IMG/VR virus record: IMGVR_UViG_3300009093_000035
Location: 1 to 64,000 of that record
DNA: 64,000 nt
Direction: 5' to 3' (one strand)
The position numbers were made by a program, and so were the translations under genes. Below are positions 3,473-7,987 of the stretch, piece after piece; the stretch's first letter is position 1, and the number at the start of each line of letters is the position of its first letter. The notes beneath the pieces are model-generated. The model was not told the DNA's origin and did no database searches. It saw nothing but the letters and a program-made list of their open reading frames with translations.

Positions 3473-3696
3473 TCGTTACGAGCCCGCGCTGGAAGGACGA
3501 GGAGCTGAAGCCGGAGGACGCCTTGCGTCAGGCGATCGGCTATTCTCTCATCACCAGCATCCATCGGAACGGGCCTCGTGGGATTCCCGGACAGATCATC
3601 GGTCGGATGCCGGAGAGAGTGCGTAAGGCGCTCTCCGAGCTTCGTTCTGAAGACATCCAGGACGTTCGCGCCTTCGACACCCAGAACTTCGGATGA
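3469..3696 (+). CDS. hypothetical protein
   Basis: GTG start overlapping the previous stop; GCGTAA upstream. Confidence 0.45.
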   Translation: MIVTSPRWKDEELKPEDALRQAIGYSLITSIHRNGPRGIPGQIIGRMPERVRKALSELRSEDIQDVRAFDTQNFG

Positions 3697-3770
3697 CGAA
3701 GCTCTAGCCGAGCTTCCGGTCTGATTTGTAGTGACGTTCGGTCGCTATGTCTTCTGGTTGAGGGACGAAC

Positions 3771-3992
3771 ATGGACAAGAACTGTTCCTGCGGGCGTGAG
3801 CTAGCCTTTGGTGAAGAGAAGATCGACGCAGAGGGTGGTCGTCGGATCGCGGCCAATTGCCCATGCGGGATTCTCTACGTCCGCGAGATGAGGCCAGCTC
3901 GTATCGAGTTCATCTCCATGACCTTCCACATCGATTCGAAGACGAAGGACGGGCTTACGGCCTTCGACATCTCAATGGAGCCTCGTAAATAA
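3771..3992 (+). CDS. small Cys-containing hypothetical protein
   Basis: CSCG and CPCG; GAGGG RBS. Confidence 0.5.
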   Translation: MDKNCSCGRELAFGEEKIDAEGGRRIAANCPCGILYVREMRPARIEFISMTFHIDSKTKDGLTAFDISMEPRK

Positions 3993-4065
3993 CCTGTAAT
4001 ACGAGCGCATCGACCCCATCATTTCGAGTGGGCATTTACGAATATTTCAGGATACGGAGGATGTC

Positions 4066-4753
4066 ATGGAAAGCGTGATCGTAGAGATTCGAGCTGGAGA
4101 AGGCGGAGATGACGCGAAGCTTCTGGTGAAGGAGCAGTTCGTTGTGTATGTGCGCCTGATCGAGCGGAGGGGTCTTTGACTGCTTCATCGTAGACGAGCG
4201 CCCCGGCTTCCTCTCGTTCCAAGTGAGCGGGAAGGTGGCACGCTCGACCTTCTCTCAGGAATCCGGAGGGCACCGCTGGCAGCGCGTACCTCCGAACGAG
4301 AAGAGGGGACGAGTCCAGACCTCGACCGTCACTGTAGCGGTCCTCGACGAACCGAAGGAGTCGGAGCTTCGGATCGAGGAGAGAGACATCGAGTGGCAGA
4401 CCTGTCGCGGTAGCGGAGCCGGTGGTCAGCACCGGAACGTCACCAACTCGGCCGTCCAGATGACCCACCTCCCTACCGGGATCCGAGTCCGCGTCGAGAA
4501 CGAGCGCTCCCAGCACCAGAACCGAGAGACAGCCCTCCGGGTCCTACGAGCCCGCGTACACGAAGCGCGGACGTCGGCGGCTACCTCGGCTCGGGAAGAC
4601 TCCCGACGGGCGCAGGTGGGCTCGGGGATGCGAGGGGACAAGGTCCGGACGATCCGCGCTCAGGACGGCCAAGTCACGGACCACCGACCGAACGGCGGTC
4701 AGATCCGGTACAAGGACTACATCCGCGGGAACTGGGAAGGCCTTCTGAGATAA
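4066..4753 (+). CDS. class I peptide chain release factor-like protein (RF1-like, no domain 1), expressed through a programmed +1 frameshift, 228 aa
   Basis: ORF1 4066-4179 (MESVIVEIRAGEGGDDAKLL...RRGL*) has a GGAGG RBS. The +1 frame from GAC 4178 continues DCFIVDERPG...ESGGHRWQRVPPNEKRGRVQTSTVTVAV...SGAGGQHRN...THLPTG...ERSQHQN to TAA 4751-4753. Confidence 0.92.
4166..4180 (+). promoter_or_regulatory. prfB-type +1 ribosomal frameshift cassette (internal SD, 3-nt spacer, CTT TGA C)
   Basis: GGAGG (4166-4170), GGT, CTT (4174-4176), TGA (4177-4179), C. Same geometry as the RF2 AGGGGG-UAU-CUU-UGA-C site. Confidence 0.9.
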
Positions 4754-4757
4754 GGAA

Positions 4758-5876
4758 TCAGGGCGTAGTCCCCACCCAGCCGCAGTACTGAGGGTAGATC
4801 GCGGCTGCCATGGCCGGCCCCTCGCTCGCGTTTGGGTGTAGACCGTCCGACTTCGCCAACGTCATCCCAGCGAACGTATGGTCTGCGATCACATTCTGAC
4901 CGCCGCTGACCGCCGTCGCGATCACGCCGGGGAGGTAATTTGCGTTCCAGTCAAGCACTTGAGCCGTAATCGGCGCACTCGCCGAGTACTGGAGCAGGTC
5001 CATCGCGATGACCTTGGCTTGCGGCATCTTGCTCTTGATGTCCGCCAACAAGGCTGCGTATCTCACGGCCAGCTGAGCGTTCGTCTGGCCGTCGCTCACT
5101 ATGTCATTGATGCCGATCAGAAGCGGAATGACGTCCGGGACGAAACGAGTACCGAACGCATACGTCGCCGAATCGAGATTCGCCTGTAGCGTGACGGTCG
5201 TTAGGCCACCACCGGCCAAACAACGATCTCTCGCGAAGGGTGTGAACGCTGGCTTCAGCGGTCCGACAGGACGAAACGGAGCGCCTCCGTCGGGCCGCGC
5301 GTCGATTGTGGCTTGAGTAAGACCGCGCCACTGAGCGATGTTGCCGGCTTGGGCGGTAATCGAATCGCCCATGAAGCAGACTTCTTTCGCCCCAGCGTAG
5401 CTGCTCGTCCCCCACTTCGTAGCGACGTACGCCTTAGCCTGAGATAGCTCCGTAGGAGAGGGCGCCGTCTTGCGCATGAAGATACAACCGAGCGCGACGT
5501 TAGCGCAAACCGTGCCGGTGTATCCTGCACCGACGAAACCCGTGTTGGTCAGCGCTGAGAGTACAGATGGCGTGCCAGTGTGTTCCTTATCGTTGTCGAC
5601 GCTGACGTAGGCTACGCCGCCGACGATACGGCAATGCACAGCGTACGATCGACCGTCTGCGTAGAGCGGGGCGAAGCCGGTAATGCCATAGGGCGTCGAG
5701 CCCGTACCGAGGTCGGCGCCAGACTGAGTCACCTGAACCATGTACGGTGCGGCGCTGCCGGCGCTAACGATGCCGGGGGAGCTGTAGTACGAGGTCGGGG
5801 TGGGGTCGGCGGGAAGCGCGACCGGCGTCACGACGACGATCCACCAACCCTCTGTAGTGGTTACGACAGAGGAGGC
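4758..5876 (-). CDS. 3' part of SGNH/GDSL esterase tail-associated protein B (5' end lies inside the inverted segment; 453 aa when reconstituted)
   Basis: FMGDSIT, LLIGIND and SDGLHP catalytic blocks. The frame reads ASSVVTTTEGWWIVVVTP from the junction at 5876. Confidence 0.8.
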   Translation of the reverse strand, partial: ASSVVTTTEGWWIVVVTPVALPADPTPTSYYSSPGIVSAGSAAPYMVQVTQSGADLGTGSTPYGITGFAPLYADGRSYAVHCRIVGGVAYVSVDNDKEHTGTPSVLSALTNTGFVGAGYTGTVCANVALGCIFMRKTAPSPTELSQAKAYVATKWGTSSYAGAKEVCFMGDSITAQAGNIAQWRGLTQATIDARPDGGAPFRPVGPLKPAFTPFARDRCLAGGGLTTVTLQANLDSATYAFGTRFVPDVIPLLIGINDIVSDGQTNAQLAVRYAALLADIKSKMPQAKVIAMDLLQYSASAPITAQVLDWNANYLPGVIATAVSGGQNVIADHTFAGMTLAKSDGLHPNASEGPAMAAAIYPQYCGWVGTTP

Positions 5877-6199
5877 AGCGGAGCCGACATCGCTATCGGA
5901 AACGCCCGCTTCGCCGATATCCCCTCTTGGGTTGCGGCGGCTTGAAGGACTGACCCATGGGTTTTCGAGCTTCTCAGGCGGGAGGGAGGTCCAGAGGACT
6001 AGCGTCTCTGGATATCCTCAATCCTCAGCGTCTTCAAGATGAGCGTGGTATCACTATCAGCTCATGGCCCAATAACGGTAGTGCGGGCGGATCTAGCGCT
6101 CAGGGAACTGCGGCCAACCAGCCCACCGTCACTACTATCGGCGGCAAGGCTGCGCTCCTTTTCGACGGCAGCAACGACGTACTGGCCGACTCGTTCGCT
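5877..6199. other. 323-bp inverted segment carrying the 3' end of gene A and the 5' end of gene B
   Basis: The + strand encodes GADIAIGNARFADIPSWVAAA* (to 5945) and MGFRASQAGGR...FDGSNDVLADSFA (5957-6199) between minus-strand genes. Ends are AGCG (5877-5880) and CGCT (6196-6199); flipping restores both frames. Confidence 0.85.
5957..6199 (+). CDS. N-terminal 81 aa of SGNH tail protein B, in inverted orientation
   Basis: AAGGA RBS. MGFRASQAGGRS parallels gene A MPFRAAISGGRA. SSWPNNG...QGTAANQPT...LLFDGSND is typical tail lectin-like sequence. Confidence 0.75.
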
Positions 6200-7987
6200 C
6201 GGCTGAGACGGGTGGATCTGATCGCCCAGGAAGGTGATGAACGGGGAGATGTCGGCGGGGGTCGTACTACGAACGGCCTTGAACCCGGCGTTGTGGAGAG
6301 CCGTAACGATAGCCGGGTGACCCGCGTTGACCGCCGCGAAAGTAGCCGCGTTGGGGGAACCCGGGCAGATGTACAGGTCGTCTACGACGAACAGGGCCGT
6401 CGGGAAGAGGGCCGCCAGAGCCAACATGAAGGTCTGTTTGTCGGCGAGAACCGTCGCTGCTGAGTGACCGCTGACGATGACGTCATTCGTACCGATGTTG
6501 ACGATGATCACCAGCTTGCGGCGACCAACGGACCAGTCTCCCGGAAGGGCGCCCCACGAAGACCCGCTGAGGTACGTCGTGAGAGAAGAGATCGCGTTGC
6601 CGTTGTGGGCGAAGCACAGGTCCTGAGGGAAAGCGATCGCCGCCTCCGAAAGGGGTCCCACGGCATTGTAGATACGACCCGACACGGGTCCAGCGTCGAA
6701 GAGACCCTGGAGGTACTTCCTCCACTGGGCGATGTTGGCGGTACCCGAGCCGCCCGACGTGATCGAGTCTCCCCACCACATGAAGTCCACGGCGGAGGGG
6801 GTCGATACCGTCACGGACGGGATACCGATGGGTCCGATCCCGCGAGGATCCACCCGGCAATCGGCCTCATTCCCCGAACTTCCGTAGACGCCTCCGAGAC
6901 CGATGTTCGTAGCGGTCCAGGTCCACGGAGTTCCGGCGCTACCCGCGACTCCATTGACGCTTACGATCGCCGTAGCGGGATTCCAAGCAACCACCCCTAG
7001 GAGAGCGTGGAACGTGAAGACGAGGTACCCGCTGGCCGCCTTCACGGTTCCGCCCTGAACGGCCTCGATTCGAACGCCCGTCCCGTCGTGTCGGAAACGG
7101 ATACCGTTGTTCGCGTCGTCGAACGTGACGAGCCAACGGATATCCCCGCTGAACATCTCAGTAGAGGCGAAGTTCGGAGAGACCTGGTAGAACTGAGCGG
7201 CCTTCGAGAGAATCAGGGGGTTGAAGGTAGAGACCGGCGCGACGTCTCGTCCTCGCGGATGACCCGCGGTCCCGTATTGGTTGGTGTTGCGGATCGCGCT
7301 CGTGGGATAGTTCCCCGGCTCGCTGCTCACGAAGTCGTAGACGCCGTCTCGAACGCCTGCGGTGAGACCACCGTGCCCACTCAGGTCATCGTTCTCCGAG
7401 AGCATCATCTGGGACTCGCCGCCGTTCGCGGCTACGCGAACCCGGTAACGACGCCACGTCTCGGTAAGGACGGTTTCACCCTGGCTGGTCTGATTCCCCG
7501 CGGGACCGCCGGTGTACAGATTGATACAGGCCGGACCCGTACCTCCGATACTAGCTCTCGCCCAGGCGCTTCCAGCCATTGGGGCGCTGAGAGCCGCCAC
7601 GTTTACGTTCTGGCGCCAACGGAGAGTCGCGTCCCCAGCAGTCTGAACGCGAGTAGCCTTTCGACCATCCGGGCCTTCCACGTAAGAGCCCGTGACCGTA
7701 ACGCCACCTTGGTTCGACCAAGGCGATAGAGTGATGTCACGGGAGTGACCCGTTTGACTGGTCGTACCGCGTTCGAGGAGTAGCATCTTCCCTGCCCCGT
7801 CGTTCCGGTCTTCATACCGGGGAACGTTGGACGCGGCGAAGTCCATGAACGAAGTGGACACGCCCGTAGAAGGCGAGGTCGTCAGGAACGTACCCTCAGT
7901 GGTACGTGTGAAGGGGATCTGAGAGAAATCCACGAACGGTGTCGGGGTCGACGCCCGTCCTCCACTAATGGCTGCTCTGAAAGGCAT
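6062..7987 (-). CDS. SGNH/GDSL esterase tail-associated protein A (last ~44 aa derive from the inverted segment; 618 aa when reconstituted)
   Basis: N-terminal phage spike-like region (FTRTTEGT...PRYED...LLLE), then WGDSIT, IVNIGTND and GDQIHP. Confidence 0.8.
   Translation of the reverse strand: MPFRAAISGGRASTPTPFVDFSQIPFTRTTEGTFLTTSPSTGVSTSFMDFAASNVPRYEDRNDGAGKMLLLERGTTSQTGHSRDITLSPWSNQGGVTVTGSYVEGPDGRKATRVQTAGDATLRWRQNVNVAALSAPMAGSAWARASIGGTGPACINLYTGGPAGNQTSQGETVLTETWRRYRVRVAANGGESQMMLSENDDLSGHGGLTAGVRDGVYDFVSSEPGNYPTSAIRNTNQYGTAGHPRGRDVAPVSTFNPLILSKAAQFYQVSPNFASTEMFSGDIRWLVTFDDANNGIRFRHDGTGVRIEAVQGGTVKAASGYLVFTFHALLGVVAWNPATAIVSVNGVAGSAGTPWTWTATNIGLGGVYGSSGNEADCRVDPRGIGPIGIPSVTVSTPSAVDFMWWGDSITSGGSGTANIAQWRKYLQGLFDAGPVSGRIYNAVGPLSEAAIAFPQDLCFAHNGNAISSLTTYLSGSSWGALPGDWSVGRRKLVIIVNIGTNDVIVSGHSAATVLADKQTFMLALAALFPTALFVVDDLYICPGSPNAATFAAVNAGHPAIVTALHNAGFKAVRSTTPADISPFITFLGDQIHPSQPSERVGQYVVAAVEKERSLAADSSDGGLVGRSSLSARSARTTVIGP

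Follow-up and report, generated by a model that had tools for sequence, protein, structure and literature searches.

A short RF1-derived release factor of phages and Myxococcota encoded across a prfB-like +1 frameshift cassette, a candidate sensor of failed termination

The window, by which we mean the whole stretch of DNA analysed (64,000 nucleotides), is the start of the 248.6-kb IMG/VR contig UViG_3300009093_000035. Between positions 4056 and 4753 it carries a release-factor gene that is divided between two reading frames, with the following features:

4056..4060, plus strand: Shine-Dalgarno (SD) sequence GGAGG of the zero-frame ORF, 5 nt upstream of ATG 4066
4066..4179, plus strand: zero-frame ORF, 37 codons and TGA; first strand and helix alpha5 of release-factor domain 2
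4081..4116, plus strand: VEIRAGEGGDDA motif, strand and tip of helix alpha5; conserved family-wide
4166..4170, plus strand: internal SD-like GGAGG, its 3' end 6 nt from the stop; the spacer GGT comes next
4174..4180, plus strand: shift site CTT_TGA_C, comprising the slippery CUU_U, the candidate sensor stop and a weak +4 C
4178..4753, plus strand: +1-frame ORF, 191 codons and TAA; rest of domain 2, domain 3 (GGQ) and domain 4
4289..4297, plus strand: decoding tripeptide P-P-N, in the place of PxT in RF1 and SPF in RF2
4421..4429, plus strand: GGQ peptidyl-tRNA hydrolysis motif, intact in all family members examined

The zero-frame peptide, M-E-S-V-I-V-E-I-R-A-G-E-G-G-D-D-A ... R-R-G-L, includes VEIRAGEGGDDA and stops at TGA 4177-4179, and the +1 frame, which is open from GAC 4178 to the TAA at 4751-4753, contains HRWQRVPPNE and GGQ. 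Both pieces were read at base level and fused they come to 37 + 191 = 228 aa. An earlier note on this DNA had described an ATG at 4066 with its own GGAGG, a 37-codon ORF ending in GGAGG-GGT-CTT-TGA-C and a stop-free +1 frame giving 228 aa in total, and all of this can be read directly from the bases. Within the cassette the order is GGAGG at 4166-4170, GGT, CTT at 4174-4176, TGA at 4177-4179 and C at 4180, and the 3' end of the SD-like element therefore lies exactly 6 nt before the TGA. The SD-like element of prfB likewise ends 6 nt upstream of the stop (PMC10732093), and every element of the prfB cassette anatomy that had been recognized here (SD, 6-nt distance, CUU_UGA_C) is present at 4166-4180. 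The pattern GGAGGNNNCTTTGAC, which spans 15 nt with 12 specified bases, was found in the 64-kb window at this site and nowhere else, shuffled sequence giving an expectation of 0.00 copies; the presence of the same cassette at the same codon in 118 related loci, described below, is far stronger evidence than this chance count. No Rfam element was matched in 3600-5200, and a promoter and terminator scan of the locus yielded nothing useful. Gene callers report only the C-terminal part of the gene, as had been anticipated.

The product was identified by Pfam and NCBIfam profile searches in which the two pieces were searched separately and natural uninterrupted relatives were used in place of the fused product. 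Piece 1 matched RF1 profile positions 104-138 (Pfam PCRF positions 100-134, E 4.6e-6), and piece 2 matched RF1 profile positions 158-330 of 347 with 194 bits (Pfam PCRF 154-194; RF-1 domain, E 2.8e-30). By both libraries the two pieces are collinear on RF1 and neither has a counterpart of domain 1, the protein starting at about residue 105 of Thermus thermophilus RF1. RF1 was the best model (194 bits), followed by RF2 (131), PrfH (82) and ArfB (39), all of them below the full-length cutoff; for the RF1 (prfA) equivalog the cutoff is 400 and the coverage extends only over profile positions 104-330. PrfH (RF-H) was rejected as an identity (TIGR03072, 82.4 bits against a cutoff of 166.65; no RtcB among the flanking ORFs), as was ArfB (39 bits, with a cutoff of 100; the protein has domains 2 and 4).

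The uninterrupted relative L057 aligned with T. thermophilus RF1 residues 108-332 (E 9e-42), the counterpart of the VEIRAGEGGDDA motif in the continuous relative corresponding to residues 108-120, and the AlphaFold model of L057 (pLDDT 87.3) matched ribosome-bound RF1 with a TM score of 0.87. In this model the recoding site lies in the loop that connects a long helix (residues 15-34) to the strand that follows, which places it in domain 2 near residue 140 of T. thermophilus RF1 (about 138-158 on the RF1 profile), within a conserved E-x-R-G-(W/F/L) motif. The protein had been proposed to be RF1-like and devoid of domain 1, and to carry its cassette at a position unlike that of prfB; the best model, the collinearity of the pieces, the lack of any match to domain 1 and the location of the site after helix alpha5 of domain 2 agree with this. 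We consider it likely that the short factor is an auxiliary class-I release factor derived from RF1 and without domain 1. The part of PMC1586002 that cites Mora et al. (2003) describes domain 1 as dispensable for release in vitro and truncated RF1 as working in vivo, and domain 1 is the portion of RF1 that contacts RF3 (PMC1586002). The product of the window gene is expected to be active in peptide release and to have no need of RF3.

We collected 161 related loci, 81 of them viral and 80 from bacterial genomes, and 118 of the 161 need the same +1 shift. The viral loci comprise 46 that need the shift, to which L048 can be added since its cassette is visible and was missed by the classifier, 24 with a single in-frame stop, eight that are uninterrupted (seven distinct sequences) and two that are odd or incomplete. 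Among the bacterial loci 72 of 80 need the +1 shift, three have an in-frame TGA and none is uninterrupted. Two loci, L034 and L138, show an extra frame disruption (an apparent +2) and are probably decayed copies or assembly errors. At least 7,464 matches at E <= 1e-20 were obtained among the candidates scored, and the database names of the fragments are 'peptide chain release factor 1' or 'release factor-like protein', with lengths of about 140-234 aa. Bacterial isolates that carry the family include Archangium gephyra, Pyxidicoccus fallax, Minicystis rosea, several Nannocystis and Thiobacillus denitrificans; the other bacterial loci are mostly from MAGs of Kofleriaceae, Polyangia and related Myxococcota, and viral and bacterial members are intermixed on the tree. 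The idea that this is a phage-specific factor could not be maintained, as the cassette-bearing bacterial loci are mostly on Myxococcota chromosomes and in Myxococcota MAGs.

The best match among GenBank phages was a gene 50% identical in a 485-kb uncultured phage, in which a 37-codon ORF ends in the identical CGGAGGGGTCTTTGAC at the same codon and the +1 frame goes on; a megablast search of GenBank phages with the locus, and with 20 kb of the window, gave no close DNA relative. Conservation at the protein level is seen on both sides of the site (41-79% identity). The uninterrupted relative P0009, of 228 aa and 73% identical, reads directly across the junction, with ERRVF-DVALIDERPG where the window has ERRGL before the shift and DCFIVDERPG after it. 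Two sets of candidate relatives were set aside: mycobacteriophage genes annotated 'RF-1' match in the GGQ domain only and belong to a different family, and plasmid matches are almost all ordinary prfA, with the exception of a Bosea megaplasmid copy that has an in-frame TGA. The anatomy of the locus, the collinearity of its product with RF1 and the conservation of the cassette are matters of direct observation.

A single-base break of frame looks like an indel, and the Bosea copy seems to have been passed over as a CDS by PGAP, both of which would be expected if the gene were a sequencing or assembly artefact or a pseudogene. The same CTT-stop break is, however, conserved in 118 loci from independent samples and isolate genomes, with both pieces conserved as protein, and the chance that the break is an artefact or decay, including the sequencing insertion that the earlier note had recognized as a danger to its reading, is negligible. 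It is also true that the arrangement of a GGAGG and then a new frame is reminiscent of translationally coupled genes, in which case a separate C-terminal protein would be made by re-initiation after the TGA or with the internal GGAGG as its ribosome-binding site. But the first ATG, GTG or TTG of the +1 frame after the junction is GTG 4223, and a protein started there would lose 15 conserved residues; RF1 and the uninterrupted relatives align collinearly with the conserved residues just past the junction, and domain 2 would be incomplete in the C-terminal piece alone, lacking its first strand and helix alpha5. Two products are for these reasons very improbable. The conserved CTT-stop and flanking peptides, the relatives that read straight through and the lack of an early +1 start thus lead us to reject the indel, pseudogene and two-protein readings, and we are confident that a +1 shift is needed to express the gene.

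Cassette statistics were pooled over 115 non-identical frameshift sites. The codon before the stop is CTT in 115 of 115, which is noteworthy because leucine has six codons and most of the loci are G+C-rich. The stop is TGA at 84 sites, TAG at 26 and TAA at five, and the base at +4 is C at 94, G at 20, A at one and T at none. A GGAGG at the prfB spacing is found at 55 of the 115 sites and a 4-base SD core at 96, about one sixth of the cassettes having no SD element. Of the pattern SD-NNN-CTT-TGA-C derived from the window, the CTT is therefore invariant at the frameshift sites, while the TGA and the exactly spaced GGAGG are conserved in part. On the tree of frameshift members the cassette stop has changed at least 19 times. 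L112 and L116, which are 96.3% identical at the DNA level, have TGA and TAG, respectively, and so differ at both variable stop bases, with one further difference within 30 nt of the cassette stop; this pair suggests rapid, and possibly selected, switching of the sensor codon. 'UGA-sensing', the term used in the earlier note, is apt for the window, where the stop is UGA, and fails for the family, with its TAG and TAA cassettes and its swaps between near-identical genes. The cassette codons CGG AGG GGT CTT encode R-R-G-L and double as SD element and slip codon, which offers a simple path by which the cassette could have arisen here independently; its location on codons of the conserved R-G-(W/F/L) motif points to an origin independent of that in prfB.

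Other members of the family have an in-frame stop at or near the same place. In one clade (L067 and L069-L081) a TGA replaces the aromatic or leucine residue of the R-G-(W/F/L) motif, a form shared by the megaplasmid copy of Bosea sp. RAC05, and in L023 and L043 (TGA) and L027 (TAG) the in-frame stop is one codon later. Another clade (L054, L058 and others) has a TGA about ten codons downstream, at the aromatic residue that follows G-G in RF1, and this second site is used as a CTT-TGA-C frameshift in L059, L146, L150 and L157. Nearly all of the in-frame stops are TGA, and the residue otherwise found there is usually Trp, Phe, Tyr or Leu. Readthrough of UGA is usually due to tRNA-Trp, and the occurrence of UGA at Trp-tolerant positions would be consistent with readthrough by this tRNA. 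Genes for tRNA-Trp(CCA) were seen less than 2 kb from the in-frame-UGA members at L064:4813-4886 and L066:1511-1587. Counts of single-stop junctions gave no excess of in-frame TGA in the neighbours of in-frame-TGA members, although the 6.5-kb loci limit the power of this comparison, so the recoding is taken to be specific to the gene and not the result of an altered genetic code. Genome-wide recoding was rejected on the same grounds: around the in-frame-TGA genes, neither alternative-code coverage nor single-stop junctions gave evidence of recoding specific to TGA. That the gene has been recoded independently at two sites, through either a frameshift or an in-frame stop, may be counted in favour of a termination sensor; gating can be dispensed with, as the few uninterrupted members show. 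The Bosea copy (L164:2390-3070; Bosea sp. RAC05 plasmid pBSY19_1, NZ_CP016463.1) puts the in-frame-TGA form on a 709-kb plasmid of a cultured alphaproteobacterium, where type I-E CRISPR-associated genes lie on one side of it and a HipA toxin gene on the other, and the gene table lists over it an antisense 'hypothetical protein' alone.

Standard-code ORFs cover 98% of the window, and a comparison of ORF coverage under alternative codes gave no sign of stop reassignment; there are no tRNA genes in the window and no suppressor tRNA in any family locus. An all-against-all comparison of flanking ORFs from 157 loci found no neighbour conserved beyond small clades, and a PrfH-like operon is therefore rejected. 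The neighbours of the window gene (1346-2897 and 4758-7987) are unrelated to translation, being a DUF7227 protein, a cytidylyltransferase-like protein and two convergent GDSL-lipase-like ORFs on the minus strand, and the region at 37-52 kb contains phage-type replication genes, for a DNA polymerase and helicases. Genes next to the Nannocystis and Archangium copies have non-phage Pfam matches (FemAB-like, DUF1569) or none. Phage loci of the family are often within tRNA arrays, 22 of the 81 having at least five tRNAs, and up to 29. At L012 the release-factor gene is among 24 tRNA genes and adjacent to a tmRNA gene (L012:3557-3908), and another tmRNA gene lies approximately 1 kb upstream of the short release-factor gene at L048 (L048:1555-1914). 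ARAGORN called a tRNA with a four-base anticodon (gatg) at L055:1512-1584, in a 29-tRNA array that includes a CTT-TAG family member.

The true terminator of the gene also sets it apart from its surroundings. Among 101 high-GC loci the gene ends in TAA in 44 (44%), as against 50 of 685 long background ORFs from the same loci (7%), and the window gene does so too, although TGA ends 41 of the 60 long ORFs of the window. RF2 reads UGA, and TAA is read by both RF1 and RF2. This bias of the real terminator towards TAA provides support for a termination sensor.

The decoding tripeptide is P-P-T in most members, P-P-N in the window and its clade and S-P-T in a few, and the RF2-type SPF occurs in no family member; the counterparts of Gln181 and Thr194 of RF1 are retained. 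The P-P-N loop of the window is not the P-x-T of RF1, and a His is replaced by Gln in RVQTST. There was no association across the family between the cassette stop and the decoding tripeptide: TGA cassettes go with P-P-T in 47 members and P-P-N in 27, and TAG cassettes with P-P-T in 13 and P-P-N in seven, which are the same proportions. The gating stop is therefore usually not one that the product is expected to read, and in most members the factor probably cannot read the UGA that gates it, so that a prfB-style self-limiting loop would not be closed.

One explanation for the cassette is nevertheless a true autoregulation of the prfB kind, in which a short factor that is omnipotent or altered in specificity reads its own cassette stop and limits its own synthesis. 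P-P-N instead of P-x-T and the change of His to Gln in RVQTST would allow the specificity of this candidate to differ, S-P-T in a few members would favour it, and an omnipotent factor would account for the use of all three stops in the cassette. Against this, the majority of members have P-P-T together with the RF1-type Gln and Thr, P-P-T and P-P-N are equally divided over TGA and TAG cassettes, and SPF is never found. The P-P-N loop, the lack of SPF and the failure of stop and loop to co-vary mean that the sequence argues against self-reading; that the factor senses itself, which the earlier note had entertained, is doubtful, and we think autoregulation unlikely. Another possibility is a fixed-ratio attenuator, where a +1 shift of roughly constant efficiency would keep the factor scarce, the identity of the stop would be irrelevant and nothing would be sensed. 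The repeated switching of the cassette stop among TGA, TAG and TAA, unrelated to the decoding loop, would fit such a device, as would the existence of uninterrupted members, and drift of the stop among three codons could indeed mean that its identity is irrelevant. However, every variant of the gene, whether frameshift or in-frame, has a stop in the A site and none has a hungry sense codon; T at +4, the strongest termination context, is avoided at all 115 sites; the in-frame stops at two sites create the same dependence on failed termination; and the same cassette in prfB responds to release-factor levels (PMC5009743). An attenuator that senses nothing is accordingly improbable, and a genuine sensor role is the reading that we favour, with some reserve.

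The relationship of this gene to known systems can be set out as follows. Like prfB, it has a short zero-frame ORF, an SD 6 nt before the stop, a CUU_U slip site and a UGA followed by C, and its product is a class-I release factor that would be made only after the shift. Whereas the prfB site is at about codon 26 in domain 1, the site here falls on codon 38, past helix alpha5 of domain 2, and the protein is RF1-derived and without domain 1; moreover, the cassette stop of the family may be UGA, UAG or UAA and is probably not the one that the product reads. PrfH is similarly a bacterial class-I release-factor paralogue without domain 1, with an altered decoding region and a sporadic, horizontally spread distribution, but the PrfH model gives 82 bits against a cutoff of 167, there is no RtcB or other conserved neighbour, and no recoding requirement is known for PrfH genes (PMC1586002). 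The release factors of stop-recoded phages (Lak, crAss-like, Jade) are also phage-borne members of the RF1/RF2 group and often lie near tRNA genes. In those phages the RF1/RF2 genes are reported to be in standard code and it is the genomes that reassign a stop (bioRxiv 10.1101/2021.08.26.457843), whereas here the release-factor gene itself is recoded and the window is without signs of reassignment or tRNA genes. A brief mention in PMC5009743 concerns a giant virus of amoebae whose release factor gene needs readthrough and frameshifting, and this is again a viral release-factor gene the expression of which requires recoding. In the review of Atkins et al. (2016) there is no RF2 gene with an early in-frame UGA that is read in the same frame, and an RF1/UAG counterpart is given as unknown (PMC5009743); RF1 genes are described as being without recoding (PMC1586002, PMC5009743), and all CUU-stop +1 cases in RECODE are prfB according to the PRFect paper (PMC10885494). 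The short RF1-type family is absent from large prfB surveys, and no description of recoding in it was found in the open-access literature. It appears, then, that recoding of a known type occurs in a large family for which it has apparently not been described in that literature.

We propose that the gene would be expressed as follows. Ribosomes would start at ATG 4066 and translate 37 codons, after which the P site would be occupied by peptidyl-tRNA(Leu) on CUU and the A site by UGA-C, and during the pause the internal GGAGG would pair with 16S rRNA at the prfB distance. Prompt reading of the UGA, normally by RF2, would release a useless 37-aa peptide; if termination is slow, the tRNA would re-pair on UUU in the +1 frame and translation would continue to the TAA ending at 4753, giving the 228-aa factor. 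Output of the factor would in this way rise as the efficiency of termination at the sensor stop falls, and in the window, where the sensor is UGA, RF2 activity should set it. Relatives may achieve the same dependence through UAG or UAA cassettes or through an in-frame stop, which is nearly always UGA. Both the slip and its dependence on release-factor levels are inferred from the biochemistry of prfB. Overall, an auxiliary RF1-derived factor whose synthesis is conditional on failed termination at a sensor stop is the probable function of the locus. From the sequences, expression of this gene would seem to have been made conditional on failed termination repeatedly, at two sites, by two mechanisms and with three stops. 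The earlier note was right on the mechanism and on the new position of the cassette, and too narrow on host range, on the identity of the stop and on feedback.

The benefit to be had from an RF1-like factor, probably one that reads UAA and UAG, when UGA termination is poor is not obvious. Tentatively, and with less confidence than in the conditional synthesis itself, it is possible that the family is an unrecognized backup terminator, a short RF1-type, RF3-independent factor whose synthesis in cells and large phages would be reserved for failures of normal termination, such as those due to depletion or trapping of RF1 or RF2 in a conflict. Its own stop would be the sensor, and lineages may have retuned it, with UGA, UAG or UAA and by slip or readthrough, to the release factor at risk.

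The family is abundant: we count at least 118 loci, and metagenomes contain thousands of truncated genes labelled 'release factor 1'. Annotation is affected by it, as the genes are at present entered as fragments or passed over, with antisense ORFs annotated instead. CUU-stop +1 frameshifting, which has been regarded as specific to prfB, has a second and apparently independent use in another release-factor lineage. Members with three different stops, two sites, slip or readthrough, and uninterrupted forms amount to a ready-made comparative experiment on the sensing of termination efficiency, and they raise the question of what role a short RF1-like factor without the RF3-contacting domain has in huge phages and Myxococcota. 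If the backup-terminator reading is true, this would be the first recoding-controlled gene on the RF1 side, and the in-frame-stop members would be natural examples of a release-factor circuit that, according to Atkins et al. (2016), was unknown for bacterial RF1 and RF2.
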